Source: Chlorokybus atmophyticus
Lineage: Eukaryota; Plantae; Mesostigma and Chlorokybus algae
NCBI GenBank assembly: GCA_009103225.1
Contig: RHPI01002568.1
Span: forward strand, 199,742-263,741
Length of the DNA: 64,000 bases
Direction: 5' to 3'
In this document: in pieces, positions 7,686-57,406 of the stretch
Layout: each line of letters begins with the position of its first letter
Numbering within the stretch: position 1 is the first letter of the stretch
Made by a program: the position numbers and the translations under genes
The notes under the pieces: generated by a model
Databases searched by the model: none
The model's input: only the letters and a program-made list of their open reading frames with translations
What the model was told of the DNA's origin: nothing

Positions 7686-9486
7686 ATGGCGGATGCTGCC
7701 TTCGCGATAGCCTTCATGGCGATCGACTTGCTCGTGGAGTTGGCAAAGCAGGTCAGCAAATCTGTTCTTGAATTCTTGCTGATCAGTAGGAATTCACTTA
7801 TAGCGCTAACTGTTCTCACAATTGCTGGCCAGCTTACCCATCCATGAACTTCTTGTGGCGAGTAGCGGCTAGAAGTTGTGCTAAGCGGCATGGGCGACCT
7901 TGCGTGTCTTTAAGAGGATATCGTCTGCGTGACCAGCAGGATTCAAGCCCAGTCTCAAAGCACAGACACAGAGCATGGGGCTTGACTACTTGACAAAGGT
8001 CGTTGCCATAATTGATCAGGTGGCCTCCACCCACAGCACTAACAATGCGAGGGCGCATGCTGCCGAGTTGGGGCCGTTGTTGGGCTTCAATTGTCCTATA
8101 TCGCTGGAGATCATGAAGGACCCGGTAATCATTACAGAATCCGGTCAAACATGTGATCGTACGAGTGCACAGAGATGGTTCGCTGATGGCCATACCACGT
8201 GCCCAATCACAGGTTAGTGTTCTAGAGTGCAGCGGTATACCAGCAGCGAGCAAGTGGCCGTGGTGTTGTGCTACTGAGCACGACGAATTGTATACACATA
8301 ATGCCAACCGGTACTCGCTGTTGCATGTGTAAAACTATCATCAACCCAGCTTACTCTAAATTACGCGCTGCGGGGTGCTGTGGAGGATTGGTTGCACCGT
8401 CAAAGCACAATCACGTCACTGGCAACCTCCCCAACAACAGCCGGTGCAAGCGTCTCAGCGCGCCTGCATGGGATTGTGCTGCAAAGCAGTAGGGACGCTC
8501 ACAAGCTCTGTGCGCTCTTGCAGTCGGGCATGTTCGTGTTCGTTCAAGCAGCAGCCCTGGCCGCCTTGCGCCGCATGGCAGTGAACGGGCAACATGCTGC
8601 TGTTGCTGAAGCTGGTGCAGTTGCCAAGTTAGTTAGACTTTAGCACGATGGTACGTCGATCTGCAAGGCGGGAGCAGCAAACGTTCTGGGCACCTTGGCC
8701 CGGTCGGGCTCCGCTTTGAACAGGAATATCACCATGACGGGAGCCGTGGCCCCTCTGGTGGCGCTGCTGAGTACGGGCACACCAGAAGGCCAGCAGTACG
8801 CAGCTTTGGCTCTCTCCGAGCTTGCTTTTTATTCTAGGAACGCGCAGGGTTAGGGTTAGCCGCAATGCCGGAGCTATCGGGCCAGTGGTCACGCTGCTCA
8901 CATGGCCCACACGCCAGCGCTCAAGTGGGCTGCTATGAGCGCAATTGCGCAGTTGATTCGTCATGACGCTTATGCTGCTGTGGCCAGTGTCGAGGCTGGG
9001 GCGGTTGTGCCGCTAGTGGTACTTCTTCGTGACGAGAATTTAGATTGCCAGGACTTGGCAGCGGGTGTCTTAAATGAACTTGCGTGTCACATTGAAGACG
9101 CAAGGGTGGCCATTGCGCTGGCTGGTGTCATTCCTGCCCTCGTGGAGATGCTGAGCGCGAGCATGCCAACATGCCAGCAGCGCACTGCTGAGACCGTTGC
9201 CAGCATGGCGCATGCGAGTACCAAGAACAGGTTGGCAATCAGCCGCGCTGGAGCTGTCAGGCCATTGGTGGCGCTACTTGGTGTATTAAGCACACCAGAA
9301 TGCACGTTGGCGGCCGCAAGAGCACTTTGTTATCTTGCCTACAAGAACAAACGTATTACGGCGGCAATCATTGCGGCTGAGGCCGTTGCACCGCTGAACG
9401 CGCTTTGGGTTGCATGTGCACATGCATATGGTGAACCACTATGTCAAGCACCCGCGGCAAGTGCGCTCCCTCGTCTCGCGCAGTGA
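7686..9486 (+). pseudogene. PUB-A: U-box/ARM paralog pseudogene with exons 2-3 deleted
   Basis: Exon 1 at 7686-7751 (MADAAFAIAFMAIDLLVELAKQ|gt). Intron 1 joins mid-exon 4 near 7863. U-box [14 protein letters not shown]...TCPITG ends at about 8212. The exon 5 acceptor is CAT instead of CAG (8324-8326). About 7 ARM units with frameshifts and stops. Confidence 0.9.
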
Positions 9487-9709
9487 TGTTGTCGAGAGTT
9501 GTCAACTCCATGCCAACGAACCTTTGCATCCACATTGTGCTGAGCAAGAGCATGCAGCAGTGTCAGCCATTGACGCTGCAGTTTTGAGCTTACAACATAT
9601 GAATACCATGGTGATGACACGCAAAGAGCCAGCATCAAGCGAGAGAGAAGCGCACAAAGAGCGCTCAGTACACGGCTGATGAGCTTAGGCAGCCAAGCAT
9701 TGTGATTAG

Positions 9710-13603: not shown

Positions 13604-13609
<6 letters not shown>

Positions 13610-13637: not shown

Positions 13638-13896
13638 GTGTGGTGTGTGTGTGTGTGTGTGTGNNNNNNNNNNNNNNNNNNNNNNNNNNNNNNNNNNNNN
13701 NNNNNNNNNNNNNNNNNNNNNNNNNNNNNNNNNNNNNNNNNNNNNNNNNNNNNNNNNNNNNNNNNNNNNNNNNNNNNNNNNNNNNNNNNNNNNNNNNNNN
13801 NNNNNNNNNNNNNNNNNNNNNNNNNNNNNNNNNNNNNNNNNNNNNNNNNNNNNNNNNNNNNNNNNNNNNNNNNNNNNNNNNNNNNNNNNNNNNNNN
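13610..13896. repeat. (GT)n microsatellite running into an assembly gap (N 13664-13896)
   Basis: Directly visible. Other N gaps: 2389-2543, 22825-22885, 27708-28446, 36243-36540, mostly flanked by poly-G/C. Single Ns occur near 12400, 39182, 52820, 54719 and 61168. Confidence 0.95.
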
Positions 13897-15087
13897 GGGG
13901 GGGGCACTGCGTCACGCAAAGTAATAGTCGATAGCCACCAATGCTATATCGTTGAAAGCAATGTGGTCGATACACTGTTGCGCAATGCAAGTAAGCGCAC
14001 ACTACCAGACTGTTGTTGGTATCTGCTAGCTGGGTCAATGTGGCAACCCATCATCAGCAACAGCACTAGCAACTACAGTAGTGGTACTACTGGTTTGGAA
14101 GACACTCCCCGCCTACAACCACAACTTGACGCTGCCAGTGAGCATACCTCTGGGATCGTAGTTTCCTATGCAGTCTCCGAGACTGTACACAGCCTGAGTC
14201 AGGCTGTGTACAAACAACAACAACAACAACAACAACGTCAAGACAATCTCAAGTCAGCTCATTGTTGAATCAGCACAGCAGGCTGGGGGAGCAGTACATG
14301 AGATGAGGGAACTGTCGGAACTCCCCATCATCACTATGTTTCAATGCTGCTCCTCAGAGTCGGAGGGACAACACGGCATGCGACACCGTGTCACACCGCA
14401 GGCATCCAGAGGGCAGAGGACATTGGGATTGCACACTCAGCATTTCCCAACGTTGAGTGGCCGGTGCTGGAATTGCGCCCACGTGTTGGTGTGAGTGCGT
14501 TGTGTGCCAAGGCATTTGCATTGCAATGCATGTGTGTACATGCATGCATGCAAGCGCACAGACACTGTGTGATGTACACGATTGGGAAGTCACAAGATAT
14601 GGCAGATAAGTACATTCTTAGACGCTAATGTCATATTTTGGTCACGCGAAGGCACGGTGCCTTAGACACATAGCATGACTTGCAACCAGCAAACACCGCA
14701 GATGTACAGGAAGCTTGTTGGCTGTGTACGGACTCAGCAAAGCAAACACAGAGTTCGGTCCTTGTGGTTGTCTAGTGCAGCAGCTGTTCCACGCACCTCA
14801 TACCACCAACAGCAATGACTTATCAATCTGCATGCCTGGTATCGCTCTATCCAACATCTCCGGCAGTGGTACCTCGACGTCGCGCTCATCATTGCCATGC
14901 AAAGCATCCGACACAATTTGCTCAACTGTGCCATCCTTGGCTGGCTCAAGCTCATTAGTGAGAAGCTCTGACATCTGAGTTGTTCGTGCCCTTTTCTCTC
15001 GCATGCTGCTGGCTCCTCGCTAGGCAAAAAGTAAGCTGAGAGCTGCAGAGTCAAATCGCTGATGCTGCTGCTGCTGCGTGCGCTTTC

Positions 15088-18000
15088 TCAGTGCAAAGCG
15101 GATGCAGAGGTTCGCCACCGTAGGGAATGTCCACCTGGCAGACGACAACTTTTGCAACAACACTGCCCAAGATTCGTGAGCGCTACTGTCGCGTTTTCTC
15201 GACAGGATGGTTCGCCATCTCGAAGCGCCTTCAGCGGTGCAACAGCCCCAGCCGCAATAATAGCCGCTACAACACTATTGTTACTGTTGGAAAGATTTCG
15301 AAGTGCTCTTGTAGCTGCAAACTTGCATTCCGGTGTGCTTGACTTGCACAGCAGCGTCACCAACGTTTTGATAGCTCCAGCCTTGCCGATTGCCACCTTG
15401 TACACGGTATTATTAAAGGCAATAATGGCGAGGGCATCAGCGGCGTACTGCTGACATGTCGGCGAGCTCCTGCTCAGCAGAGCCGCACGGGCAGGAATGG
15501 CTCCAGCCCGCGCCATAGCAACCCTATTATCTGCAACATCATTTGCAAGTGATGCCAAAACACTCGCTGCCGATGCCTGGCAGTCCACATCCTCATCGTC
15601 AAGAACTGCCACTAACGGCGCAATGGCCCCAGCCTCAGCAATGGCCGTAGCAGCATTGCCGTCATTGACAATTAGATTCCGGATTGCATTCATAGCAGCC
15701 TGCTTGAGTTCTGATGCGTTGGACATGTGAAGCAGCGTGATCAGTGGCCCAATAGCTCCGGCACTGCTGATAGCCACTGCAGTTGTAGCACGACAAGCAA
15801 GGCTGCAGAGAGCTGAAGCTGCGTGCTGCTGGCATGTCGACGTGCCCGTGCTCAGGAGAGCCACGAGAACCGGAATGGCTCCAGCCCGTGCAATGGCCAC
15901 CCTATGGTCTGGGACGTGAAAAGCAAGACTGCTCAGGGCTCTCGCCGCCTCTTCCTTGCAAGCTGGTCTGTCATCATCCAGAACAGCCACTAGCGCAGCA
16001 ATGGCTCCAGCTTCAATGTTGGCCGCAACATGTGCGTGATTGGTCAGAATGCGAAGAGATGTCGCAGCAGCCAATGTGCATTCTGGTGCGCTGCGAAGTA
16101 GTGCTACCAGCGGCGCAATAGCTCCTGCACTGCTTATAGCCACCGTGTTTGCAGCACTGGCGCAAGCAAGGTTGCCGAGGGCTTTAGCTGCGTATCGCTG
16201 GCACATTGGCGTGCTCGCTCTCAGTAGAGCCACGAGGGCAGGAATAGCTCCAGCCCGCGCAATGGCCGCCCTTGCGTCTGCAACCTCAGCTGCAAGTGTT
16301 CCCAAGAGATAAGCTGCCAACCTCTGGCAGTCCACATCCTTGTCACGAAGAAGCGCCACCAGTGGCGCAATGGCCCCGGCCTCAACAGTGGCCACAGCAG
16401 CATTTTCGTCATTCGTCATATCAATCACATTCCGAAGTGCATCCATAGCAGCATGCTTTTGTTCTGATGCGTTTGACATCTGAAGCAGCGCTACGAGTGA
16501 CCTGCTGATAGCCACAGCAGTTTCAGCACTCCCGCAGGCCAGGTTGCCGAGAGCCTCAGCTGCGAATCGCTGGCATGTAGGCGTGCCTGTCTGCAGCAGT
16601 GCTACAAGAGGGAGAATGGCTCCTGCCGCAACGAGTGCTGATGCCGTGGCGGCGCTCGACTCAGCCAAGAAGTTCAGATACTGCGCTGCTTGCTCCTGGC
16701 AGTTCACATCCTCGTCATCGAGAAGTGCCACTAGCGGCGCAATGGCCCCGGCCTCAACGGCCTCAGCAACATACTCGCCGTATAAATCCACATTCCACAA
16801 TGCAGCTATAGCAGACTGCTTGAGTTCTGATGCGTTTGACATGTGAAGCAACAATATCAGCTGCCTTATGCCTCCAGCACTGCAGATAGCCTCAGTGTTC
16901 TCAGCATTGTCAAGAGCAAGGCTGCCGAGGGCTTCTGCTGCGTACTGCTGGCATCCTTGCGTTCCCGTGCTCAGCAGAGCCACGAGGGTGGGAATGGCTC
17001 CAGCCCGCGCAATGGCCGCCCTGTGATCTACGACGTAAGAAGCAAGATTGCTCAGGGCTCTGGCCGCCTCTTGCTGGCAAGCTGGTGTGTCATCATTCAG
17101 AGCTGCTACCAGAGCAGCAACGGCTTCAACCTCGATAGTCGCGGCAACATCTACATGAGTGGTCAGGATGCGGAGCGCTGTCATAGTAGCCAACTTGCAG
17201 GCAGTTGTGCCAGCAGGAAGTAGCGCTACCAGCGGCGCAATAGCTCCGGCTCTGCTCATAGCTACCTGGTGCTCAGTATTGTTCAAAGCAAGGTTGGCTA
17301 GTGCTTCTGCTGCACGCTCCTGGGAAGTCGGTGTGCCTGCCTGCAGCAGCGCCACGAGAGGGGTGATGGCTCCTGCGGTGGTGATTGCTGTGTTTACGGC
17401 GGTACTCGACCGGGCCAAGATGCCCAAAACGTCTGCTGCTCGCCCTTTGCAGATTGCTGTACCGTTGTGCAAAAGTCGAACCAACTCTCCAACTGCGCCA
17501 GCTTCAGCAATGGCAGCACATTGCCCATCCACTGCCATTGTGCGCAAGGCGCTCAGGGCCTGTTCTTGAGTAGACATCATTAAGCCCAGCGTCAAGATCG
17601 CACAGAGCTTGCGAGCGTCCCCTAGGCTTTGCAGCACGAGTTCATTCTCGTATGCTGCTGGTGACGTAACTGTGCTTTGACGGTTCAGCCAATCCTCCAC
17701 AGCACTCCGCAGCGCATAGCTTGGAGTAAGCTGGGTTGATGATAGAGGTACACCTGCAACAGCGAGTACCGGTTGGCAAAATGTATATACAATTCATCGT
17801 GCTCAGTAGCACAACAACACCAAGGCCGGTTAGACACTGCTGGTATACAGCTGCACTTTGAATCACTAACCTGTGATAGGGCACGTGGTATGGCCAAGAG
17901 CGAACCAATGTTCTGCGCTTGTGCGATCACATGTTTGACCCGATCCCATTATGATCACTGGGTCCTCCATGACCAGCGAAGATATTGGACAATTGAAGCC

Positions 18001-19174
18001 CTCTAACGGCCCCAACTCCGCAGCCTGCTCCCTCGCATCACTAGCGCTGTGGGTGGATGCCACCTGATCGAGCACAGCAACAATCTTTGTCAAGTAGTCT
18101 AGCTCCACTTGCTCTGTGTTTGTGCTTTGAGACTGGGCTTGAATCCTGCTGGTCATGCAGGCGATATCCTTCTTAAGGCACGCAAGGTCGCCCATGCCAT
18201 TCAATACAACTTCTAGCCGCCGCTTGATGGCCTCATCAGCTTGCGGCCCGAGCACGAGCGCGCGCACGTTCTCTGCCAACGTCGCGTCCTCTGCAGCCAC
18301 TGCCAGCTTGGTGTCCTGGCACAGATGCATGTTGAAGCGTCCTTATAAATCAGCCTCATCTTCGAGCACCAATGTGCACCTTTAGTTCTTCTGAAATCAA
18401 AGCCCGCAGCCCGCATATCGCAGCCGCGTCGTTCAGATTGGCCAGGTCTAGGCTGTTCAAGCTGTAATCGATGCCCTGGCAGGAATGCACAGATCAGCAG
18501 ACGAGCCAGAAGCTACAAGCAGCACTGTGAGCGTCCTCAATCCTTTGCCACTGACTTGCAAGCAGCCGTTGAGGCGGTCAGTGACGCTGTTGTTGTTCCA
18601 CAACAAGGAGTAGATGCTGGTGCTTTGGCAGTGGCAAACTGCCTCTGCAGAGCGTTGCAGTGATTGGTTGAGTGAAGTGAGCGATGGCATGGTGACAGAG
18701 CTGTGCCTCTCAAGGGACGACAAGAAGTGCTTCAGGAAGCCAACTCTTCTTGCCACCACATCACAGTTCTTTTTATTCGTTTTCACCTACAAACAATGGT
18801 ACGAGTATGTGGCGCTGCAAGGGCGGGGCCGGGGGGAGGATGTGCATGGGAGGCAGCGACACTGCAAATGTGCATACATATATGCGTATGTGTTGAGTCG
18901 CTGTCCATGTGTGTATACGTGCATATGCATGTGCATGCAAGTATGCATGTGGATATGCAATTGTGGGCATATGTATGTATGTGTGTGTTTGCGCGTGGGT
19001 GATATGCTTGCAACGCAAAGCTCATAGATAGGTAGTCGTCTAGTTAGCAACTGTGCAACTACATCAGCGCTGTTGTGCATGCTGTGAACTCAACCCAAAA
19101 TCGCTAACCTGCTTTGCCATGTCCACAATTACTTCGATTGCCGTGAGGGCTGAAGAGAAGGCAGCATCTGACAT
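15088..19174 (-). CDS. PUB-B: intact four-helix-bundle (MLKL/UND-like) - U-box - ARM protein, about 1167 aa, about 19 ARM units
   Basis: Inferred exons on the minus strand: 19174-19109, 18786-18556, 18475-18380, 18315-17871, 17753-15088. All junctions are GT-AG with consistent phases; total 3504 nt with no internal stop. U-box FNCPISSLVMEDPV...TCPITG|VPLSSTQLTPSYALR. Confidence 0.88.
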
Positions 19175-19967
19175 GGTCAGGTGACGGTGATTTATGGCAA
19201 ACAAGCCGATTCCGATGGGTGTCCTTGATTGCCTTAGCAATCACATTACACCCGCATTGGACTGCTGAAATTGATAGCTCTGTTGACTACAGCTGCCTGA
19301 CGCCAGCACCTGCATAAATGTTGCAAGAAGGACACACTTCATGGCCAGCTTGCAAGCTTACAATGTTGCGGCACAGCCAAGACTGCCAAGAAAACAACTG
19401 AACAACACACGTGTGTGCTCGCAAACTAGCAAGTGCCAGTCTCACGCCAGCTGACGTCAACCAACTGCCATAATCCAGTTTGCCAAGCAGGAAGCTGACT
19501 ACCACGAGCGACTTCAATGTTTAGGTTTAGACGAAAGCATTTCCGAATTCACTGCATAGCATGCAGAGAGGCATGTTCGCTGCTTGCGGCACACTCTGGA
19601 AGCGAAAGCGGTCCATACACAGGCACATTACCGACTAATGCGGCACGCTTACCTTGACCAGGCAAGAGCAATGGGCAGCCAGCAGGTCTATCGCGAGAGT
19701 CAGCACTTAGCAGCCTTGTCCAACCCAACCAGCTGACCTGGCGACCACCTCGCCCGCCTGTGCGACCTGGCCGGCGGCCTGGCGGAGGCCAGCAAGCAGG
19801 CGGGCGAAGACAGGCCAAGTCTGGCTGTCCAGCACCAGCAGCAGCAGCAGCAGCTCTGCAAGCTTCTGCCTCTGCTGGTGCTTTAGCGAACTGCTTGTCC
19901 ATGGTCAATGAGGAGTAGCCGAGCAGGTGGCTTAACGACGAAACCGCCGCCGCCGCTGAAGGCGCCC

Positions 19968-19979
19968 CACGTGCAGCTG
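19968..19979 (-). promoter_or_regulatory. Conserved CAGCTGCACGTG (E-box + G-box) upstream of PUB-B
   Basis: The identical 12-mer lies upstream of six paralogs: 19968-19979, 21657-21668, 37697-37708, 39568-39579, 51385-51396 and 53165-53176. It sits about 60 bp 3' of a shared TATA-like GTTC(T/G/A)TAT(A)TCC motif. Flanks are also homologous, so function is not proven. Confidence 0.35.
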
Positions 19980-21656
19980 ACCCCCCTCCTGTCAAGTCAG
20001 CCACACCGACTTCCATGTTGCGTGTGCGCAGCTCCCTGGATATAAGAACATGTCTGGCGACGGACAGGTCCAATACATGACGCCTGAAGGCGACAGGTGC
20101 ACACGGGTGTGGTGCTAAACTTATCAGCCATGTAAACGGGTGTCGTGCACATGGACATGTAGCCTAAGCAGAGGTGTGAAAAAGCACCATCGCTACCAAG
20201 CATGAATGTGCACATAACGAGATGTGCCTCTTACAACTGAACACGCATACATAACACACACAAGAGTTGCGCGTAGCATACTCCGAAGTATAGGATAGAA
20301 CACCGTGCACAAGGCAATAAGCAAGCACGTAGAGCACAAGACTAAGTGGAGGCAAAAACAATGTTAATTTACTACTACGCCAACTCAGCTAGACCCCGGA
20401 GTCTCAAGCCGATGCAGTAGCAAGCAGGGTTGGACAGCACATCGCATCTTATTACCTTGCAATTATTGTCACAGCATGTACATTTGGTGGTTTACAACAC
20501 AACAAGCAAAATGTCACGGTGAATTCAATGTCAATATGAAGAAGCATGCTTTTAACGGTTTACGTAATACAATTTCTCAGTTTATGTACACATGTATGAA
20601 GATATGTATTACCACTTTTTAAGGTGCCCATTCTATTACCATTTTACGTAGCACAATAGGATGTTGCAAATGTGCTTGGTTGGATAGCGTGTGTAAGTGC
20701 GTATATGAGATAGCGATTTTCTTTGTGCGGATGTGTTCTCGTGTATACAATGCATGTGTTGAAGTCATACATGGATATGGTATGCATAGGCGGAGGCCGG
20801 AGTATAATAACGGTGTTTGACCAGAAGCATTGCATGTATGCACGGAGTAGTTGTTGCTTTTTTGAAATTCATTTGCAGTTATTGTTGCTTCAGCAGAGAC
20901 TCTCACTTGTTTCAATTAAGCGAGTCAAAAATACGATAACACAAGGCACTATGTCTTTTTGCAAAAATGGCGAAGAGCCAAACATTTGCTGTGCAAGTTC
21001 TATGAAGGCCGCGGCGTGTATGTAAAAGAAAGGGGGGGGGGGAGGCAGATTATATGTCACAAGACACTGCGTCAATCAACTCTCAGACTACTACTATACT
21101 ATTACTACTGCTATCAGTAATAATAATAATACCATATTGGTAGGGCGCAATAGTGTGGCAAAATCTTTACGAAAATTATCGTTGTAGTAAATTTGCAACT
21201 ACGTATCCAACGGCTGAAAATATGCACTCCGGTTTACATTCATTGGATTGCGTGTTTTTATAGGAATAAGATACAAACCAGCTTTCAGCCAGCCCTTTTA
21301 ATCAACATTTAACGGCACGACAATAGAGGTTGTCGTTTATTATCACTGCGCAATGGTCCACACTGATGCAATTGATGCCCTCCATCTAAATGATGAATGA
21401 TTGGTTGCCTCATGAAAGTTTTTGCCAATGATGTATGCAGTCAATGGTCAAACATGCAGGCAATGCGCATTGCATGCGTTATACGCGTCTCGCCGTCAGG
21501 AGTCATGTGTCATGACTCCTGAATTGGGAATGCGTACTGCATTATGCAGTACGCTTACTCCACCTCTGTCGCCACGTATGTGTTGTTGTTCTTATATCCC
21601 GGGAGCACGGCAGCAGCGCACATGACCCGGTATGGCTGACTTGACAGGAGGGGGGT

Positions 21657-21668
21657 CAGCTGCACGTG
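21657..21668 (+). promoter_or_regulatory. Conserved CAGCTGCACGTG (E-box + G-box) upstream of PUB-C
   Basis: Same 12-mer as upstream of B, D, F, G and H. TATA-like TTATAT at 21592-21597. Confidence 0.35.
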
Positions 21669-21737
21669 GGGCGCCTTCAGCGGCGGCGGCGGTTTCGCCG
21701 TTGAGCCACCTGCTCGGCAGACCACTGCTCATTGACC

Positions 21738-22429
21738 ATGGACAAGCAGTTCGCTCAAGCACCAGCACAGGCAGAACCTTACAGAGCTGTTGCTGCTGCT
21801 GCTGCTGGACGGCCAGACTTGGCCTGTCTCCACCCGCCTGCTTGCTGGCCTCCTCCAGGCCGCCGGCCAGGCCGCACAGGAGGGCGAGTGGCCAGCTCCG
21901 CTGGTTGGGTTGGTCAAGGCTGCTCTTTGCTGACTCGCGCGACAGACCTGCTGGCTGCCAATTGCTCCTGCCGGGCCAAGGTGAGTGTCCCGCACTAGGC
22001 CGTAATGTGCTTGTGTATGAAACGCTTTTGCTTATGGGCGAGTGTGTGCGAAAGCAGCGCAGATATGGCTTTGCATGCAGTTGGTTCGGGACTGGTTCTG
22101 TTCTTGGTTACAATGATTGTTCGCGGTAGTCAGTCGTGCTTGGCAAACAGGTTTGTGGCAGTTAAATTGACGTAAGCAGCTTGCGTGAGACCGAAACTTG
22201 CTAGTGTGCGAGCACACACATCGTGTTCAGCTATTAACTTTGCCGTCTTGGCCGCATTGCACACGTGCAAGCTTGCAGGCTGGCCATGAAGAGGTTCTTT
22301 GCAACAATATGTGTGCAGGTGCTGGCGTCAGGCCGCTGTAGTCAAACAAGCTGTCAATGTCAGCAGCCAATTGCGGGCTTTTGTGATTCAGGCAAGCAAG
22401 GACAATCAGTAGAACTGGTTCGACTTTAA
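21738..22429 (+). other. Putative spliced upstream ORF (about 117 aa) in the 5' leader of PUB-C
   Basis: ACCATGG start at 21738, donor AAG|GTGAGT after 21980, acceptor TGCAG| before 22319, stop TAA at 22427-22429, 22 nt before the main ATG at 22452. The ATG, donor and acceptor recur in paralogs (F: 39653, 39901, 40235). Confidence 0.4.
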
Positions 22430-22451
22430 TCTGCCACGAGCGACCGTCACC

Positions 22452-25400
22452 ATGGAGGATGCTGCCATCTTGACAGCCTTCACGGCAATCGACTTAATTG
22501 TGGAGTTGGCAAAGCAGGTCAGCAATTCTGTTCAGTAAGAGTTGACTGCACCTGTAGCGCTGTTGTCGTTGCTAACCAGCGCTTATCCATCTATGAACTT
22601 CTTGTGGCAAGTACAACACCCACGCATATTTGCATGCATACGTATGCGTGCATACGAAATCACGCAGACATACGCACTTGTTACAGAAGCGCATATGCGC
22701 ATGCATACTTGCAGGCACACACACCACTGCATGCGTCTGTACGCACGTACAATTAGGCAGACACGTAAACATTAACGCATTTGCAAGAGCGCTGCCCCTC
22801 CCCTCCTCCTCGGCCCCCTCCCCCNNNNNNNNNNNNNNNNNNNNNNNNNNNNNNNNNNNNNNNNNNNNNNNNNNNNNNNNNNNNNCCCCCCCCCCCCCAA
22901 ACACACACATGCAGACGTACTGATGGTGTTGTTTGTAGGTAAAAACGAACAGAACAAATTGTGCTGTGCTGGCACGAAGTGTCGGCCTTTGGAAGCACTT
23001 CCTGGCGGCCCTTCAGGAGCAATGTAGAGGGGACCGCGCTGTTAGCATGCCATCGCTCACCTCACTCAACCAGTCACTGCAACGCTCTGTGGAAGCAGTT
23101 TGGCACTGCCAAACCACCAGCGTCTACTCCTTGTTGTGGAACAACAACAAGGTCACTGACCGCCTCAACAGCTGCTTGCAAGTCGGTGACCTGTAAACTA
23201 GGACGCTCATTGTGCTTATCTGTAACTACTTGTTGAAGAACTGACCATCAGTTCAACACCGCCAGGACATTGAACACAGCTTGAACAGCCTAGACCTTTC
23301 CAGTATGAATGATGCGTATGGGACACGAGGGCTGCTGACCGTGATAGAACACGACTTAAAGGTGCATATTGAAGCTTGAAGTGACTTTGAAATAATGGAT
23401 TGATGTGAATTTATGGCAGGACACCAAGCTGGTGGCGGCTGCCGAGGACGCAGCGTTAGCAGAGGACGTGCGCGCGCTCGTGCTCGCACAAGCTGCCCAG
23501 GCCATCAAGCGGCAGCTGGAAGTTATGTTAGATGGCGTGGACAACGTTGGTTGCCTCAGTCCAGATACCGCCCTCATGACCAGCCAAGTCCCATCTCAAA
23601 GCACCAATCCGACGCGATTGGAGCCGGGCTACGTGACACAAATCAGTGCCGTGCTTGATCGTGTGGCCTCCATCCACAGCGCTAACGATGCAAGGGAGCA
23701 GGCAGCAGAGTTGGGGCCATTGGAGGGCTTGATTTGTCCAATATCGCTGGAGATCATGAGGGACCCAGTGACCATAACAGGATCGGGTCAAACATGCGAG
23801 CGCACATTGGCAGAGCATTGGTTCGCTGCTGGCCATACCACATGTCCAATTACAGGTTAGTTATTCTAGCATGCAGTGTACATCCGTAGGGAGCAAGGGG
23901 GACTCGGTGTTGTTATGCTGAGCACACAGCGCAGCATGCTCAGTATGCCAACTCGTTCTTGCTGGTGCAGGATTGAAGGTAACAATAACGGAGCTCATTC
24001 CAAACCACGCTCTGCGGGGCGTGTTGGAGGATTGGTTGACACGTCAGAGCAGGAGTACATCTGCGCCAACCTTGCCAACAGAAACTACTCCAAGCTCCTC
24101 AACAGATCCGCAGGGGTTGAATCATCAGAACGGAGACTTGTCACCAACAGCACCCAGCACGAGTGAGTCAGCGGCCTTCCAACTGCCAACAGCGGTTGGC
24201 AACGTTGTAGTTGATGAAGACGCGCTTGTTCTGCAATGCAGAGGAGACGCTCGCAAACTCTGTGCACTCTTGAAAGCGGGCATGTCCGTCCAAAAAAAGG
24301 CTCTAAGCGCATTGCGCACCATGGCAGTGGATGGGCAATACGCGGCCGTTGCTGCAGCTGGCGCAGTTGGAGAGTTGGTTCAACTTTTGCACGTTGGCAC
24401 AGCGAACTGCCAGGAGCGAGCAGCAGACGTTCTGGGCATCCTGGCACAGTCGAGCACCGCTTTGAGCACAGCAATCGCCATGGAAGGAGCCATTGCCCCT
24501 CTGGTGGCGCTGCTGCATACAGGCACGCCAACTTGCCAGGAGCGTGCAGCAGGAGCACTAGCCAACCTTGCTCTGGACAATGATGAGAACCAGGTGGCTA
24601 TGAGCAGAGCCGGAGCGATTGCGCCGCTGGTGGCGCTACTATGTACAGGCACAACAGCCTGCAAGTTGGCTGCTACAACAGTGCTCCGTGTCCTGACCAC
24701 CCATGCAGATGTTGTGGCGAATGCTGACGTTCGAGCCATTGCTGCTCTGGTGGCGGTTCTAGATAGTGACACACCAGCTTGCCAGGAAGAGGCGGCAAGG
24801 GCCCTGAGCAACCTTGCTTTTCACGTCGAAGATCACAGGGCGGCCATTGCACGGGCTGGAGCCATTCCTGTTCTCGTAGCTCTGCTGAGCATGGGCACAT
24901 CCAAAGGCCAGCAGTACGCAGCTGAAGCCCTGGGCAACCTTGCCTTCAACAATGCTGGAAACAAGGTGTCTATCAGCAGCGCTGGAGCCATTGCGCCGCT
25001 TGTAGCACTAATCAGCAGCGCAGGCGCACCAGAATGTACATTGACTGCCTTGACAGCTCTCCGCATCCTAGCCGACCACACACATGTTGCGGCCAACGTA
25101 GAAGCTGGAACCATTGCTGCGCTGGTAGCTGTTCTGGAGGATGACAGACCTTCTTGCCAAGAACAGGCGACGAGCGCCCTGAGCAGTCTTGCTTTGCACG
25201 TCCCAGACCACAGGTGGGCCATTGCGCAGGCTGGGGCCATTCCGGCTCTCGTAGCTCTGCTGAGCACGGGAACGCAAAGATGCCAGCAGTACGCAGCTTC
25301 AACTCTCTGCTACCTGACATGGAACAAAGCTGGGAAGGCACCGGCTATTTGCCGCGCTGGGGCTTTTGGGCCACTGGTTACGCTACTTCACATGTCCAAC

Positions 25401-48748: not shown

Positions 48749-50371
48749 TCACTGCTCAAGATTCCCGAGCGCCATTCTCGCTTGTTCCCGACAGCGTGGT
48801 TCACCATCTCGAAGCGCCTTCAGCGGTGCAACAGCCCCAGCCGCAATGATGGCCGCCACAACACTTTTGTTACCAGACGAAAGACTTTGAAGTGCTCTTA
48901 TAGCTGCAAGCTTGCATGCCGGTATGGTTGACGTGCACAGCAGCGTCACCAATGGTTTGATAGCTCCAGCCCCGCTGATTGCCAGCTGGAGCACGGTACT
49001 GCCAGCAGCAATGTCGGCGAGGGCATCAGCGGCGTGCTGCTGACATGTTGGCGTGCTCGCGTCCAACAGAGCCACAAGGGCAGCAAGGACACCAGCCCAC
49101 GCAGTGGCCGCCCTGTGGTCCGCGGTCCAGAAAGCAATATTGCTCAGGGCTCTCGCCGCCTCTTCCTGGCAAGATGAGTCGTCATCATTCAGAACAGACA
49201 CAAGCGCAGCAATGGCTCCAGATTCTATGTCGGCCGCACCGCGTGCGTGGCTGGTCAGGAAGCGGAGAGATTTCGTGGCAGCCAGTTTGCATTCTGGTGC
49301 GCTGCGAAGCAGTGATACCAGCGGCGCAATAGCTCCAGCGCTGCTTATAGACACCCTGAATTCGGCATTGTATGAAGCAATGCTACCGAGGGCTTCAGCT
49401 GCGTACTGCTGGCATCCTTTCGTTCCCGTGCTCAGCAGCGCCACGAGGGTGGGAATGGCTCCAGCCCGCGCAATGGCCGCCCTGTGGTCTGCGACATGAA
49501 CAGCAAGATTGCTCAGGGCTCTCGCCGCCTCCTCCTGGCAAGCTGGTGTGTCATCATTGAGAACCGCCACCAGAGCAGAGATGGCTACAATCTCAAGACT
49601 CGCTGCAACATCTGCATGGGTGGTCAGGATGCGGAGCGCTGTTGCAGCAGCCAACTGGCAGGCTGTTGTGCCTGCACGAAGCAGCGCCACCAGCGGCGCA
49701 ATCGCTCCGGCTGTGCTCATAGCCACTTTGTTCTCATCGTTGTCCAAAGCAAGGTTGGCAAGTGCTCTGGCTGCACGCTCCTGGCATGTTGGCGCGCCTG
49801 TGTGCAGCAGCGCTACCAGAGGGGCAATGGCTCCTGCCATGGCGATTGCCGTGTTCCAAGTGATGCTGGACTGTGCCAAGATGCCTAGCACGTCTGCTGC
49901 TCGCTTCTTGCAGTTCGCTGTACCGTTCGCTGTACCATCGTGCAAAAGTTGAACCAACTCTCCAACTGCGCCAGCTGCAGCAACGGCATCACATTCGCCA
50001 TCCACTGCCATGGCGCGCAAGGCACTCAGGGCCTTTTCTTGAATGGGCATTGACAAGCTCAGCATGAAGAGCGCACAGAGCTTGCGAGCGTCTCCTTTGC
50101 AGTGCAGGAAAAGCGTGTCTTCCATGACAATGTTACGAACCGCTGCTTGCAGAGGGGAGGCTGCTGACTCGCTCGTGCTCGTGTTGTGTGCCGTTGGTGA
50201 CAAGTCTCCGCTATGACGATTCAACCCCTGAGGGCCTGCCGAGCAGCTTGGGGCAGTTTCTGTTGGCGAGGTCGGCACCGTTGATATACTCCTGCTCTGG
50301 CGTCTTAGCGAATCTTCCAACGCGCCCCGCAGAGCGCGATTTGGGATGAGCTCGGTGGATGACAAATTCAT
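48749..50371 (-). CDS. PUB-G: ARM-only ORF (540 aa, about 10 ARM units) lacking the four-helix bundle and U-box
   Basis: Uninterrupted ORF from an ATG two bases into the ancestral last exon (acceptor before 50373) to ...MALGNLEQ*. Upstream exon 1 (50578-50513) has an in-frame TAG, and intron 1 is fused to intron 4, so exons 2-4 are deleted. Expression is unknown. Confidence 0.6.
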   Translation of the reverse strand: MNLSSTELIPNRALRGALEDSLRRQSRSISTVPTSPTETAPSCSAGPQGLNRHSGDLSPTAHNTSTSESAASPLQAAVRNIVMEDTLFLHCKGDARKLCALFMLSLSMPIQEKALSALRAMAVDGECDAVAAAGAVGELVQLLHDGTANGTANCKKRAADVLGILAQSSITWNTAIAMAGAIAPLVALLHTGAPTCQERAARALANLALDNDENKVAMSTAGAIAPLVALLRAGTTACQLAAATALRILTTHADVAASLEIVAISALVAVLNDDTPACQEEAARALSNLAVHVADHRAAIARAGAIPTLVALLSTGTKGCQQYAAEALGSIASYNAEFRVSISSAGAIAPLVSLLRSAPECKLAATKSLRFLTSHARGAADIESGAIAALVSVLNDDDSSCQEEAARALSNIAFWTADHRAATAWAGVLAALVALLDASTPTCQQHAADALADIAAGSTVLQLAISGAGAIKPLVTLLCTSTIPACKLAAIRALQSLSSGNKSVVAAIIAAGAVAPLKALRDGEPRCREQARMALGNLEQ

Positions 50372-53300
50372 TCCTGCACCGACCGGCTATAATGAGCTTG
50401 CAGCGATGTGTGCCCAGTATAACAACATCACCAAGGCCGGTTGCTGTGCAACCACAACAACGCGTATGGTGCAACCACAAGCAGTGAACTCTTACTGAAC
50501 ATAATTGCTGACCTGCTTGGCCAACTCCTAAATCAGGTCGATCGCTGTGAAGGCTGTCAATTTGGCAGCATCTGCCATGGTGACGGTCGCTCGTGGCGAA
50601 ATCAAACCGGTTCTACTAATTGTCCTTGCTTGCTTGGATTACACAAGTCCGCAATTGGCTGCTGATATTGACAGCTTGTTTGAGTACAGCGGCCTGACGC
50701 CAGCACCTGCACGCATGCTGTTGCAAAGAACCTCTTCATGGCCAGCTTGCAAGCTTGCATTTGTGCAGTGCGGCCAAGACGGCCAATCAAATAGCTGAAC
50801 AACACGTGTGTGCTCGCACATTAGCACACTTCAGTCTCACGCAAGCTGCTCACGTCAAACAAACTGCCACGAACCGGTTTGCAAAGCACGAAGCTGACCA
50901 CCACGAGCATCCATTAAGCACTAGGGACGAAAACATCCCTCTCACCCACCCACCCACCCACCCCCAGAACTAACTGCATAGAATGCAAAGCGGCATGTCC
51001 GCTGCTTTGGGACACACTCTGTCAGCAACGCGGTCCATACACAGGCACATTACAGACTAGTGCGGCACACTTACCTTGGCCAGGCAAGAGCAGAATTGGC
51101 AGCCAGCAGGTCTGTCGCGCGAGTCAGCCAAGAGCAGCCTTGTCCAACCCAAACAGCTGAGCTGGCGACCACCTCGCCTGCCTGTGCGACCTGGCCGGCG
51201 GCCTGGAAGAGGCCAGCAAGCAGGCGGGCGGAGACAGGCCAAGCCTGGCCGTCCAGCAGCAGCAGCTCTGTAAGCTTCTGCCTCTGCTGGCGCTTGAGCG
51301 ACCTGCTTGTCCATGGTCAAGCAGCGGTAGAAGCCGAGCAGGTGGCTCAACGGCGTAAAACCGCCGCCGCCGCTGAAGGCGTCCCACGTGCAGCTGACCC
51401 ACTCCTGTCAAGTCAGCCATACGTCCAAGTTGGGTCGTGTGTGCGCAGGTCCCCGGATATATGAACATGTGTGGTGATGGACAGGTACAACACATGACGC
51501 CTGAAGGCGACAGGTGTAACAGAGGTGGTTGACATGTAACATGCTGCCAAGCATGAACGGTACATGAGTCTACATGTACCGTTCATAGAGCGCATTGTAT
51601 AGTCTAACCTCGATCTAAGTATCGTTGGGTACCAACCAAGCTGTGTTTACGGCACCTTCGGTTTATGCATATAATGACTTTTGCAAGTTTAACATGCTTC
51701 AGCGCAATAGCCTAGGCAATACGTCATCGTAAACATGTATTGGCACATGAATGTTCATGCATGAGTCTATGCGAATGTGTAGTACATATAAACACGTATA
51801 TGTATGAGTCAGTACACATGGACAATATTGTGACATGCACTTCAACATTTTCGCGCTTGTTGTCATCACAAATGGCAATTATGGGGTGTGCTTATATCGA
51901 GTGTAATGATGCTTGAATGCGAGAGTAATTAGTCATCAACATTTGATTCTATACAAATGCTTTAATATTTTTACTTGAGTTGTGTTCAAGGCAAGTGCGT
52001 TTGATTACAAGGAGGCTGGACTGTCTTGAAATGTCGTTGCAGCATTCATTTGATGCGAAGCATGTGTATAAGCACATCTCGGGTATCCAAAAATGTGCTT
52101 TTCGTAATGTATACATGCATATTAAAATGCGCGTTATATATACATATATATACATATGTATATATAATGCGCATCTGTCGCCAACAGCCTCGTTGTATAT
52201 GTACACAAACGGTGCTTACAACAACAAAAAAAAAGTGTCAAGATTTACGCTGTACAAGTTATGAGTATTATGTGTACATACGTATTGATGTATGTGTTAA
52301 CACTTGAAAGTCGCCATCTCTGCATCCACCATGAGTGGTTTGACAGTGCTCAGATGAAATGTGCAAGTGCCTTTATATATTCAACTTATGACATGAAATG
52401 TGCAGGTGCTTACATACATCAGACTATGTCTAACGTACCATCATAAAACACTGCATGCCAACTTGTGTAGCTAAGGCAATCGCCACGTTATCAATAAAAA
52501 TTCAAAAATTTTTTAGATTGTGCTTTAAGATAACATGCTTATAAAAAGCTTGAACCATAATAAATTTGCTCAACAACAAGCAATGCGTGTATGCACATGG
52601 TATTTGTTGCCCCCAATAAAGCTTTCGTACATTTACAGCTCGCTATTCTTTAAATTACTACTCATGATTGTAAAGCTGAGTGGCTCATGCGCGCGTGCGT
52701 GCGTGCGTGCGTGTGATACGATGTTACATGGCTCTTCCCCATGTATGGAACCGCGAAGACTTAACGTTTGCTCATGGCCGGGAATGAGGAGGGGGGAGAA
52801 GGGGGGGGGGGGGGGGGGGNTGCGACGTGGCACTGCGTTGCATATTGCAATAGACACAGTGATCTCGACTCTATGTAGAAGTGTGATGCTTGCCACTTTA
52901 TGGTTGACACATGTGTATAGACGGCCTCATCTGGGATGAATATCTGGACAATCAAGGTCTTTGCCTACACACATTATATGCAGGCACTGCGTCAAACACG
53001 TGTCGCCTTCAGGGGCTTCAGGTCAGTGAGACTCTGCATAGCCAACACATGACGCCGCGTCATGTCTCATGTGTTGGCTATGCAGAGTATGTGTTGTTGT
53101 TCGTATATCCCGGGAGTACGGCAGCAGCGCACATGACCCAGTGTGGCTGATTGACGGAGTAGGTCAGCTGCACGTGGGGCGGCCTTCAGCGGCGGCGGCG
53201 GTTTCGCCGTTGAGCCACCTGCTCGGCTACTCCTCATTGACCATGGACAGGCAGTCCGCGCAGGCACCAGCAGAGGCAGAAGCTTACAGCGCTGCTGCTG

Positions 53301-53394
53301 CTGCTGGACGGCCAGGCTTGGCCTATCTACGCCCGCCTGCTGGCTGGCCTCCTCCAGGCCACCGGCCAGATCGCACAGGCAGGGGAGGTCACCA

Positions 53395-53593
53395 GCTCAG
53401 CTGGTTGGGTTGGATAAGGCTGCTTTCTATTCAGTCGCATAGCTGCTGGCCAACTCTGCTGTTGCCTGACCGTGGTGAGTGTGCCACAGCAATATGCTTG
53501 CTCAGCTGGTTGGGTTGGATAAGGCTGCTTTCTATTCAGTCGCATAGCTGCTGGCCAACTCTGCTGTTGCCTGACCGTGGTGAGTGTGCCACA
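53395..53593 (+). repeat. 105-bp-period tandem duplication in the PUB-H leader exon, duplicating its splice donor
   Basis: 53395-53488 and 53500-53593 are identical 94-bp blocks, each containing GTGAGT. Confidence 0.9.
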
Positions 53594-54023
53594 CTAATAT
53601 TCTTGTATTTGGACCGGTTGCATTTGTGAAACGTGTTCTGAAGCAGCGGCTTAGCATGCTGCGCAATAAGTTAGTGCGGAACGCTCTCGTGAGGTTAGTG
53701 CTTGATCGAATTGCCCGTGATATCAGCTGCATGCTTGGCAAGTTGATTGGTGGCAGTTAGTCTCAAGTAAGCAGCTTGCGCGAGACTGACGTTTGCCAGT
53801 GTGCGAGCACACGAGTGTATTCTTCAGCTGTTTGCAGTCTTGGCTGCACGGCACAGATGCAAGCTGGCCATCAAGTGCAGATTTACAACACATGTGTGCA
53901 GGTGCTGGCGTCAGGCCGCTGTAGTCAACAGAGCTGTCAACTTCAGTCCATCGCAGACTTCTTGTGATCAAGCAAGGGCAATCCCTAGGACTGCTCTCAG
54001 TTCTCCACGAAAGCAGCATCACC

Positions 54024-57000
54024 ATGGCGGATGCTGCTTTCTCTGCAGCCTTCACGGCGGTCAACTTGATTATGGAGTTGGCATCGCAGGTCAGCGATTC
54101 TGCTCACAGCATGCACCTGTAGCGCTTATGTTGTAGTTGCACGATTGCTAGCCAGCACTTAACCATCATTGAACTTTTTGTGGCAAGTGCATCACACACG
54201 CTGGCGTGTACACGCATATGCTTCCAGAAGCGCGTATGTGCACATATGCTTGCATGCACACGCACAAGCAGATGCAGATGCACGGAAGGTGAATCACACA
54301 CGCCCGCAAGGAACATGGAAACCCACATTTGCAAGGGCGCTGCCTTCCCCGCACCTCCCCCCCATGCCTTCGTGTTCACGCACGCACGCACGCGCACACA
54401 CACACAACTAAGTTGTCACAAAGTGGGACAGTAAGCTGCATCGTTGGACGCTAATTCGTGCTTTTATGCCTTCGATAGGGAGCATGACTTGTACCCGTTA
54501 GACACCGCAAGTGTAAAGTAAGCGGTGTAAGCAGTGTAAAGTACAAAGTCAGCTCTGTGCTCAAATTTTAATGCTAACACAGACTTCAACATTCCTTGTG
54601 GTTGTCTGCAACATCACTGCTCAAGATTCCCGAGCGCCATTCTCGCTTGTTCCCGACAGCGTGGTTCACCATCTCGAAGCGCCTTCAGCGGTGCAACAGC
54701 CCCAGCCGCAATGATGGCNGCACTTCTTGGAGTCTCTTCAGAAGCAATGCGTCGGGGACAGCTCTGTCAGCATGCCATCGCTCACCTCACTCAATCAGTC
54801 CCTGCAACGCTCTGTGGAAGCAGTTTACCAGTGCCAAAGTACAAGCATCTACTCTTTACTGTGGAACAACAACAAAGTCACTGACCGCCTCAATGGCTGC
54901 TTGCAAGTCAGTGACTTGACAACTTGGACGCTCGTTGTGCTTCTTTTATCTACAACATTCTTTGGAGCACTAACTATCATTGCATTTCCGCCAGGACATT
55001 GAAAGCAGCTTGAACAGCCTCGACCTTGCTGGCCTGAACAATGCAGATGGGACGCGGGGGCTGCTGACTTTCATTGCACATGAGCTAAAGGTGCACTTCA
55101 ATGCGTGAAGATGACGTTGATTTTACACCTATAACGTGATTTTAAGCCAGGACACCAAGCTGGTGGTGGCTGCAGAGGACGCAACGGTGGCAGAGGACGT
55201 GCGCGCGCTTGCACAAGCTGCTCAGGCTAGCAAGCGACAGCTGGAACATATGTTGAGCGGCATGGGCGACCTCGCTTGCCTTAAGCAAGACATTGCCTGC
55301 ATGACCAGAAGGAATCAAGCCCAGTCCCCAAGCACAGACACAGAGCTATTGGAGCTAGACTATTTGACACAGGTTGTTGCCGTGCTCGACGAGGTGGCAT
55401 CCACCCACAGCGCTATTGATGCGAAGGAGCAGGCTGTGGAGTTGGGGCCGTTAGAGGGCTTCATTTGTCCGTTATCGCTGGACATCATGAGGGACCCGGT
55501 GATCATAACAGGATCTGGTCAAACATGCCAGCGCACATTGGCAGAGCATTGGTTCGCTGCTGGCAATACCACGTGCCCTATCACAGGTTAGTGTGCTAGA
55601 GTGCAGCTGTGTATTAGCAGTGAGCAAGCGGCCTTGGTGTTGTAAATTACAACTTGTAATACTGAGCACGATACATTGTACACGCATGATGCCAATTGGT
55701 GCTCACTGGTGCAGGTGTACAACTATCATCGGCCCAGCTCATCCCGAACTACGCACTGCGGGGTGCTGTTGAGGATTGGCTGAACCGTCGAAGCACAATT
55801 ACGTCACCGGCAACCTCCCCAACAACAGGTGGTGCAAGCGTCTCAGCGCCCCCCCAGGGCTCAAATCAAAGCGGTAACTTTCTAGCAGCGCTCGGCACAA
55901 GCGTGTTAGCGCTTTATCAGGTGCAAGCAGCCCGTAGTACCCCTGCGTCTGAGGATGAGATTGTGTTGCAAAGCAGAGGGGACGCTCGCAAGCTCTGTGC
56001 GCTCGTGCAGCCGGGCATGTCCATGTCCATCTAAGTTAAAGCCCTGAGCGCATTGCGCATCATGGCAGTGAATGGGCAACATGCTGCCGTTGCTGAAGCT
56101 GGTGCCGTTGCCAAATTGATTGGTCTGTTGCGTGATGGTACAGCGACCTGCAAGGCGCGAGCAGCAGACATTTTGTGCATATTGGCCCGGTCAAGCACCA
56201 CCTCAAACACGGCAATTACCACGGCAGGAGCCATTGCCCCTCTCGTGACGCTGCTGCAGTCAGGCACACCGACATGCCAGGAGCATGCAGCAGAAGCACT
56301 AGGCACCCTGGCTTGTAACAGTGAGGAAAACCAGGTGGCTATAAACAGGGCTGGAGCTATTGCACCGCTAGTGGCACTACTTCGTCCAGGCACAACAGCA
56401 AGCAAGTTGGCTGCTATGACAGCGCTCCGCGTCCTGACCACCTATAAACATGCGGCGATTGTTGAGGTTGGAGCCATTTCTGCTCTGGTGACGGTTCTAA
56501 ATGATGACACATCAGCTTGCCAAGAAGAAGCGGCGAGGGCGCTGAGCAATCTAGGTGAACATGTCGCAGACTATAAGGCGGCCATTGCGCGCGCTGGAGC
56601 CATTCCTATCCTTGTGGCCATGCTGAACAGGAGCACGTCAGAAGGCCAGCTAATTGCAGCGCGCTCTCTGCAACCTTGCTTATAGCTATGAGAACAAGGT
56701 GGCTATCTGCAGGGCTGGAGGTATCGGGCTGCTGGTCGCGTTGCTCCACATAACAAACGCACCAGTACTGAAACAGGCTTCTCTGAGAGCGCTCGAGATT
56801 CTCATTGGCAATGACAAAAATACTGCTGCGGACACGGTTGAGGCAGGGGTTGCACCGCTAGTGGCACTTCTTGACAACGAGGACGTGACCTGCCAAGCGT
56901 GCGCAGCAGGTGTTCTGAGTTTACTTGTCAAGAGAAGTGCACTCAGCTGGACTGCCATTGCACAAGCTGGCGCCATTCCTGCCCTCGTGGCTATGCTGAG

Positions 57001-57406
57001 TGCGAGCAGCACGCCAACATGCCAGCAGTGCGCCGCTGAGGCCCTCGCCAACATAGCTCTTATCAACACCAAGATCAAGGTGGCAATCAGCGAGGCTGGG
57101 GCTATCAGGCCGTTGGTGAATCTACTTTGCAACTCAAGCACACCGCAATGCAAGTGTGCAGCTATCCGAGCACTTCGATTTCTTTCCAGCAACTGTGACC
57201 TTGGTGTTGTGGCGGCAATTATTGAAGCTGGGGCCGTTGCTCCGATGAAGGCGATTCGGGATGGCAAAGAAAGCGGTTGGTCACAGGCAGCAAGAGTGCT
57301 AAAAAACCTTGGCCTAGTGTCAGAAAGTCAACGTCTGCCAGGTGGACATTCCCTACGCTGGAGACCCTCTGCGTTTACATTGCGGAGAGAGAGGATGCAG
57401 CAGTAG
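54024..57406 (+). pseudogene. PUB-H: four-helix-bundle - U-box - ARM probable pseudogene, about 10 ARM units
   Basis: Exon 1 at 54024-54089; exon 2 start missing at the N at 54719, remainder to 54906; exons 54995-55090, 55151-55586 (U-box FICPLSLDIMRDPV) and 55715 onward. CAA>TAA nonsense at 56032-56034; frameshift near 56660. Confidence 0.85.
54361..54718 (+). repeat. 358-bp apparently identical copy of 48496-48853 (PUB-G 3' end and flank); probable assembly artefact
   Basis: The sequences match base for base as far as I can read. The copy begins at a poly-C tract, ends at a single N (54719), and replaces the expected start of PUB-H exon 2. Confidence 0.8.

Follow-up and report, generated by a model that had tools for sequence, protein, structure and literature searches.

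E3 ligases of the UND-U-box-ARM type, in which an N-terminal UND domain is followed by a U-box and then by armadillo (ARM) repeats, are used by land plants in stress and immune signalling. The class includes the plant U-box (PUB) proteins AtPUB10-19, OsSPL11, and Brassica ARC1, and in Arabidopsis PUB18 it is the UND that sets specificity for Exo70B1. PUB-ARM proteins are a feature of green algae and land plants, with Chlorokybus among the surveyed streptophytes (PMC11579444), and Chlorokybus is one of the streptophyte algae that stand furthest from land plants (PMC8611356). Here we describe a 50-kb stretch of the Chlorokybus atmophyticus/melkonianii genome, corresponding to JGI Chlat1 scaffold 82 and lying within a window of 64,000 nucleotides (the whole stretch of DNA analysed), that carries seven diverged paralogs of one five-exon gene. 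All derive from one gene plan, which encodes an N-terminal helical bundle, a U-box, and 10-21 ARM repeats, in that order. We consider these genes to be UND-U-box-ARM plant U-box ligases in a cluster that is duplicating, recombining, and decaying, and we assign this interpretation a probability of about 0.78. An earlier reading of the DNA letters alone (the original prediction) had proposed a locus analogous to those of NLR immune receptors, with the U-box in place of the NB-ARC or NACHT domain.

Gene plan and domain architecture

The ARM arrays lie in long open reading frames (ORFs) at 15088-17700 (minus strand), 23973-25958 (plus), 32881-34572 (minus), 41690-44740 (plus), and 48749-50371 (minus), together with several shorter ones, and Pfam scans of the ARM ORFs gave E values of 1e-43 to 1e-96 for the Arm profile and down to 1.6e-31 for ARM_PUB. 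By copy (the paralogs are lettered A to D and F to H), the Arm matches have E values of 2e-65 (C), 1.5e-85 (B), and 1.3e-96 (F), with ARM_PUB ranging from 5.4e-24 to 1.6e-31. Five of the ARM ORFs are immediately preceded by an ORF of about 150 amino acids whose end matches positions 1-45 of the Pfam U-box profile, and tblastn places this U-box exon in six copies (frameshifted in one), with the split always falling after profile position 45. DNA at three of the junctions shows the interruption to be a phase-1 GT...AG intron of about 115 bp, such that exon 4 ends within the first half of the U-box and exon 5 encodes the second half and the entire ARM array; the repeats sit directly C-terminal of the U-box. 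Three more exons with conserved GT-AG borders were located upstream by a six-way DNA alignment and a motif scan. Exon sizes are common to the copies (22 codons for exon 1, 77-81 for exon 2, 32 for exon 3, and about 148 for exon 4), and the introns are GT-AG with identical positions and phases. The number of ARM repeats varies, from about 10 in G and 13 in C to about 19 in B and 21 in F. Profile scans, tblastn, and DNA alignment thus agree with the original prediction on the seven copies, their places, and a single exon plan, and the variation in repeat number that it described is present at 10-21 repeats. Pfam scans of 30 intergenic and flanking ORFs of at least 120 amino acids gave nothing credible.

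The Pfam U-box profile matches C at E 3.6e-11 and P0002, a family member outside the window (see below), at E 5.9e-10, and the first half of the domain is present in six copies. Among solved structures, the U-box is closest to PUB12, PUB14, and one related plant ligase, with E values of 1.7e-17 to 4.9e-13 (3.6e-15 for PUB12 and 4.9e-13 for PUB14). The motifs C-P-I, D-P-V, C-P-x-T, and P-N-x-x-L-R are kept. In every copy, Cys replaces the Tyr of G-x-T-Y-E-R and one residue is inserted before it (for example, at 17871-18000 in B and 23740-23855 in C).

At the sequence level, the N-terminal domain matches Pfam MCAfunc at E 8.5e-7 over profile positions 2-125 of 143, scoring 29.2 bits where the cut-off is 35, and, at the matching residues, PUB10_N at a sub-threshold E 0.013 (16.5 bits; cut-off, 32.6), with no direct Pfam match to MLKL_N or RPW8. 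A land-plant UND (P0097) matches PUB10_N at 5e-36 and also MLKL_N at 1e-4, MCAfunc at 3e-4, and PUB2_N at 1e-3, which indicates that the UND, MLKL_N, and MCAfunc families overlap. Language-model neighbours of the Chlorokybus domain fall in the MCAfunc, PUB10_N, MLKL_N, and RPW8 clusters; their scores, 0.76-0.85, count as leads only. A phmmer search with residues 1-235 against 1.84 billion representatives recovered four Chlorokybus proteins and no relative from elsewhere, and a word-based search with residues 1-300 gained nothing except U-box matches. Comparison by hhalign with a three-sequence land-plant UND profile gave a non-significant probability of 1.6%, a value that says little given how shallow both profiles are. 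A MAFFT alignment with five land-plant UNDs is collinear, with a common K-x-x-C-x-x-L-A-R-R motif and shared later hydrophobic patterns.

The fold of this domain was modelled with AF2 for residues 1-140, using an input alignment that included the five land-plant UNDs. The model has a pLDDT of 84.7 and a pTM of 0.79, with helices at residues 2-21, 27-53, 63-89, 91-110, and 120-135 that form a four-helix bundle and a brace helix; an earlier model of residues 1-300, built from a Chlorokybus-only alignment, had the same helices at a pLDDT of 44 and was not used in fold searches. Among Swiss-Prot models, MCA2, CNR13, and MCA1 rank first (TM 0.77-0.79 to MCA1 and MCA2), followed by the N-termini of AtPUB13, 12, 18, 10, 14, and 15 and OsSPL11 (TM 0.70-0.79), with ADR1-like and CC-NLR proteins lower. 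The match to AtPUB13 covers its residues 1-141 (TM 0.79, rmsd 2.9). The five top Protein Data Bank (PDB) matches found by VIA are all MLKL N-terminal domains, at Z 11.7-12.9 over about 130 of the 140 residues, and the NRG1.1 CC-R matches at Z 9.9, on a scale where helical bundles can attain Z of about 13 by chance. Foldseek gave no match in the PDB at E <=0.001, and the relation to MLKL therefore rests on the VIA Z-scores and the Pfam cross-matches. Because the fold matches agree with the Pfam cross-matches, we regard the UND/MLKL assignment as credible. On the modelled structure, the N-terminal domain would be a UND at the level of fold, while remaining sub-threshold at the level of sequence.

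The order of four-helix bundle, U-box, and ARM repeats was predicted originally and is supported by the Pfam and fold matches, which indicate a bundle of the MLKL type. The likeness to land-plant UND-U-box-ARM ligases, also part of that prediction, is borne out by the domain order, the U-box matches, and the fold of the bundle. The suggestion that the arrangement might be novel did not hold up: these three domains in this order define the land-plant class, and once the UND is recognised as the same bundle, the architecture is that of the standard class of AtPUB10-19 and OsSPL11 and is not new. The Chlorokybus and land-plant proteins share an identical three-domain order, a U-box nearest to those of PUB12 and PUB14, matches to ARM_PUB, and N-terminal 140 residues that superpose. 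They differ in that the Chlorokybus proteins are 942-1264 amino acids long with 10-21 very regular ARM repeats, whereas the land-plant members are 611-729 amino acids long with far fewer repeats; further differences are the sub-threshold Pfam scores of the Chlorokybus UND, the Cys for Tyr in its U-box, and the placement of its genes in a decaying tandem cluster. The Chlorokybus locus stands out for how long and plastic its ARM arrays are and for its decaying cluster of inverted pairs. The four-helix bundle with a fifth brace helix at the extreme N-terminus is also shared with MCA1/MCA2, MLKL, and the RPW8/CC-R domains of NRG1 and ADR1, but the domains that come after it in Chlorokybus are a U-box and an ARM array, not a channel region, pseudokinase, or NB-ARC domain.

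By analogy with the families involved, the intact proteins (C, B, and perhaps F) would act as single-chain E3 ligases in which the U-box recruits a charged E2 and the long ARM solenoid binds substrate through its helix-3 groove. The MLKL-type bundle could then provide a second binding, targeting, or regulatory surface, as the UND does in Arabidopsis PUB18.

States of the seven copies

Two copies are intact. Copy B (15088-19174, minus strand) has exons at 19174-19109, 18786-18556, 18475-18380, 18315-17871, and 17753-15088, and its spliced coding sequence of 3504 nt has one stop, which is terminal, giving a protein of 1167 amino acids. The family's customary stop after N-L-G-Q is lost in B, which has 24 additional Cys-rich C-terminal residues (15088-15162). 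Copy C (22452-25958, plus strand) has exons at 22452-22517, 22939-23181, 23266-23361, 23420-23855, and 23971-25958, and its spliced model of 942 amino acids is letter-for-letter identical to the public protein P0001 (JGI Chlat1 8537, Chrsp82S07940), which a protein search with the ARM exon of B also retrieved.

Copy F (40365-46005, plus strand) is a mosaic and is truncated. Its exons are at 40365-40430, 40750-40980, 41065-41160, 41225-41675, and 41790-44740, and a frameshift near 44690-44705, where the sequence is not a homopolymer, brings the ORF of 1264 amino acids to its end at 44740. The tail (44741-46005) is about 1.3 kb of decayed but recognisable ARM sequence that ends at the ancestral stop at 46003-46005; it has in-frame stops after 45447 and at 45865-45867, and about 45400-45450 it is no longer ARM-like in that frame. 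Copy G (48749-50578, minus strand) is reduced to an ARM-only ORF: its exon 1 remnant (50578-50513) carries a stop at 50530-50528, exons 2-4 are deleted, and exon 5 is wholly open (50371-48749, 540 amino acids) with an ATG at its first codons.

The remaining three copies are pseudogenes. Copy A (7686-9486, plus strand) has exon 1 at 7686-7751, has lost exons 2 and 3, and retains an exon 4 remnant at 7866-8214 with a stop and a frameshift; the intron-4 acceptor has changed from AG to AT, and the short ARM part, which ends at 9486, has further in-frame stops at 8641-8643 and at about 8851. In copy D (32238-36894, minus strand), exon 1 is at 36894-36829, exon 2 is frameshifted and split over two frames, and the ARM exon is broken: a stop lies at 34591-34593, and the frame shifts at least twice more, near 32989 and 32708. 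Copy H (54024-57406, plus strand) has exon 1 at 54024-54089, an exon 2 cut at an N at 54719, exon 3 at 54995-55090, and exon 4 at 55151-55585; a Gln-to-stop change lies at 56032-56034 and a later frameshift near 56654-56685. The public model Chrsp82S07941 (305 amino acids) is H and ends at its nonsense codon. This inventory of lesions supports the predicted range of states, with B and C intact, F truncated, G reduced to its ARM part, and A, D, and H pseudogenes.

Beyond the window, the family includes Chrsp82S07937 (P0002, 621 amino acids, same scaffold), which is at most 62% identical to any window copy, and Chrsp92S08238 (P0113, 176 amino acids, scaffold 92). The P0002 model splices exon 1 straight to exon 3, and P0113 is a degenerate model. 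Searches of the public protein set recovered C, H, P0002, and P0113 but no match for B (1167 amino acids) or F (1264 amino acids), both of which have canonical splice sites; B and F thus appear to be missing from the public Chlat1 proteins.

Because the region contains four multi-base gaps and several single Ns, we considered whether the paralogs could be duplicated or chimeric contigs of fewer true genes. Two of the gaps are intergenic (13664-13896 and 27708-28446) and two lie in introns, at 22825-22885 within intron 1 of C and at 36243-36540 within intron 1 of D. There are no multi-base gaps in coding exons, and no reading frame relies on continuity over one. The first intron measures 322 bp in B and 319 bp in F, against 421 bp (61 of them Ns) in C, and these comparable sizes make the join in the public C model plausible. 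The strongest sign of a possible artefact is a 361-bp copy at 54361-54721 (plus strand) that matches the 3' end of G and its flank (48496-48856) at 99.7% identity; it spans H intron 1 and exon 2 and stops at the single N at 54719, to the right of which exon 2 lacks its first ~17 codons. This repeat in H may be a scaffolding mis-join or a very recent duplication, and the exon 2 lesion is possibly an assembly join. All other inter-copy matches in self-BLAST are only 72-87% identical at the DNA level, with synonymous divergence (dS) of 0.1-0.6. Since the copies differ by 13-28% and carry distinct lesions, they are not assembly duplicates, and we consider an artefactual origin of the cluster to be very improbable; the original prediction had listed a collapse of the paralogs into such duplicates as contrary to it.

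Duplication, repeat exchange, and mosaicism

Six of the copies form three head-to-head pairs, in which the start codons of B and C, of D and F, and of G and H face one another. The B-C spacer (19175-22451, 3277 bp) contains inverted arms at 19220-20050 and 21587-22404 that are 81% identical, and the D-F spacer (36895-40364, 3470 bp) contains arms at 37336-37711 and 39565-39936 that are 76% identical. In the G-H spacer (50579-54023, about 3.45 kb) there are two sets of arms, at 51064-51422 and 53141-53485 (84%) and at 50629-50923 and 53696-53976 (76%). With inverted arms 76-84% identical in each spacer, we conclude that each pair is an inverted duplication that includes its own upstream region. 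The predicted head-to-head pairing is therefore real. Its proposed NLR-like meaning is not supported: a sensor/helper pairing of unlike gene types is ruled out, as within every spacer the same upstream region recurs in inverted orientation and the partners are duplicates of the same gene. The G-H spacer also contains a 105-bp tandem repeat at 53395-53605, in two copies that are 97% identical. At the other end of the genes, the 3' flanks of B, C, F, and G (14672-15088, 25958-27293, 46005-46508, and 47318-48749, respectively) are homologous over 0.4-1.3 kb, which shows that the duplicated unit reaches beyond the coding region.

Within the ARM arrays, F contains tandem blocks with periods of 375 and 372 bp, equivalent to three ARM repeats, at 42379-43515 and 44519-45304, and reciprocal-best repeat matches show that block order differs between B and C. 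F is also composite in sequence. Its exons 1-3 have a dS of 0.11 to B and 0.35 to C, whereas its first six ARM repeats have a dS of 0.11 to C and 0.35 to B. Trees of the two regions conflict with support of 100/99: the exon 4 region groups (C,D) and (H,(F,(A,B))), and the ARM head groups (C,F). These dS shifts and conflicting trees establish for F the mosaicism that the original prediction described.

The birth-and-death evolution proposed for the locus is shown by the evidence of duplication, unequal crossing-over, gene conversion, and pseudogenisation. The comparisons show a history in which a single ancestral five-exon gene was duplicated in inverted orientation, carrying about 1.5 kb of its upstream region, and the resulting head-to-head pair was subsequently copied along the chromosome. 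ARM arrays evidently lengthened and shortened through unequal exchange of three-repeat (372-375 bp) blocks, segments were exchanged among copies to give an F with a B-like 5' part and a C-like ARM head, and four to five of the seven copies decayed.

Selection, alternative explanations, and significance

A repeat hidden Markov model built from 58 ARM repeats has invariant structural positions at 1-4, 7, 8, 10, 11, 22, 26, 29, and 39 and variable positions at 12-17, 20, 21, 24, 27, 28, and 31-38. The selection tests draw on only four sequences with gene conversion among them, a sample on which positive selection is not demonstrable. Pairwise dN/dS (omega) among the open copies ranges from 0.3 to 0.65 over the bundle, U-box, and ARM head and is higher, at 0.7-0.8, for the final 156 codons. 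The repeat core has an omega of 0.16-0.33 (about 0.2) over all matched repeats. For the helix-3 face, the first six repeats give an omega of 0.3-0.44 and the final three and a half (18 codons) an omega of 1.5-2.0, and the value over all reciprocal-best repeats is 0.62-0.96; for loops, the last comparison gives 0.6-0.8. One-sided tests for dN>dS on the face over all reciprocal-best repeats gave p values of 0.6-0.99, and omega is never significantly above 1. The original prediction had pointed to the helix-3 positions of the ARM repeats as the place to look for diversifying selection, which is not shown, the face having an omega of 0.6-1.0. The repeat surface is thus close to neutral and the core constrained, a pattern that fits changing or relaxed substrate specificity and is not by itself a sign of an arms race.

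A surface omega near 1 and not exceeding it is also what would be seen if the cluster reflects mostly neutral turnover, in which one or two working ligases (C and perhaps B) serve ordinary signalling and the other copies and the differences in repeat number are non-adaptive by-products of a duplication-prone, repeat-rich region. The multiple lesions in four to five of the seven copies agree with such turnover, as does the annotation of C as the sole full-length protein. The frames themselves speak otherwise, with B and the first 1250 codons of F open at an omega of 0.3-0.65 relative to C, and the 540-codon ARM ORF of G still open at a dS of about 0.3 from the others. That the frames of B, F, and G remain open suggests that selection acted on more than one copy until recently, and we regard predominantly neutral turnover as a serious but somewhat doubtful explanation.

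The original prediction went further and proposed NLR-analogous immune receptors, in which the ARM repeats would sense non-self, a U-box switch would replace the NB-ARC/NACHT domain, and the MLKL-type bundle would execute membrane damage or cell death. The cluster does resemble plant NLR loci in its tandem arrangement, pseudogenes, variation in repeat number, exchange among paralogs, head-to-head neighbours, and CC-like N-terminal bundle, and the C-terminal repeats are of the variable, superstructure-forming kind (10-21 ARM repeats with duplications of three-repeat blocks). The bundle shares its fold with MLKL and the NRG1 CC-R. However, Pfam scans of the N-terminal 300 residues and of the ARM exons did not detect a STAND NTPase, whether NB-ARC, NACHT, or another kind, in any of the copies, and the full length of C is taken up by the bundle, linker helices, the U-box, a linker, and the ARM repeats. 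We know of no switch role for a U-box. The repeats are ARM and not LRR, neighbouring genes are same-type inverted duplicates, and the family is very small (two or three intact genes among about nine members). The omega of 1.5-2 in the last repeats, which would favour recognition of non-self, comes from the 18 codons noted above and falls to 0.6-0.96 over all reciprocal-best repeats. Land-plant proteins with the same three domains are E3 ligases acting on kinases, exocyst subunits, and phosphatases, not receptors.

A further possible link to immune receptors lies at the start of the proteins, which read M-A-D-A-A in A, D, G, H, and P0002, M-S-D-A-A in B and F, and M-E-D-A-A in C. The M-A-D-A start, present in five of these eight copies, resembles the MADA motif of CC-NLRs (consensus from PMC6944444). 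Positions 5-21 score from -3 to 5 against that consensus, where the 95% and 99% percentiles of the null are 2 and 6, such that past the first four residues the match is only within the top 1-5% of random M-started 21-mers. We therefore treat this resemblance, which is driven by the first four residues, as a weak lead.

The NLR analogy, drawn from locus dynamics and the fold of the bundle, is speculation, and we think receptors of this kind improbable. An extended version is similarly unlikely: the cluster might be an NTPase-less innate-immunity module of an early streptophyte, in which rapidly turning over ARM arrays would detect proteins that are foreign or modified self, the U-box would tag either these proteins or itself, and the MLKL/CC-type bundle, whose first helix is M-A-D-A-like, would work at membranes. 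On this view, a sensor-executioner ancestor would have given rise to the UND-PUB-ARM proteins that regulate cell death in land plants (SPL11 and PUB12/13). The collections searched yielded no second Chlorokybus genome.

We therefore prefer to view the locus as a cluster of UND-U-box-ARM ligase genes, against which several points weigh. The E3 activity is predicted from family membership, and the Cys for Tyr in G-x-T-Y-E-R and the extra residue are found in all copies. Assignment of the UND depends on sub-threshold Pfam scores and on a model whose alignment held five land-plant UNDs. The absence of B and F from the public proteins may indicate that they are not expressed. Finally, the frameshift calls depend on assembly quality, although the nonsense codons and the lost splice site independently support decay.

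These findings place the full UND-U-box-ARM architecture in Chlorokybus, where the ARM arrays are much longer than in land-plant relatives, and provide a compact natural example of how ARM arrays grow, shrink, and recombine. Reading the cluster as immune receptors would be important if true, and is argued from analogy. The confident model of the N-terminal domain makes explicit a plant UND as a four-helix bundle of the MLKL/MCA type, a connection between the plant UND (PUB10_N) and the MLKL-type bundle for which we found no paper in the literature searched, and one that bears on why SPL11-type ligases control cell death.

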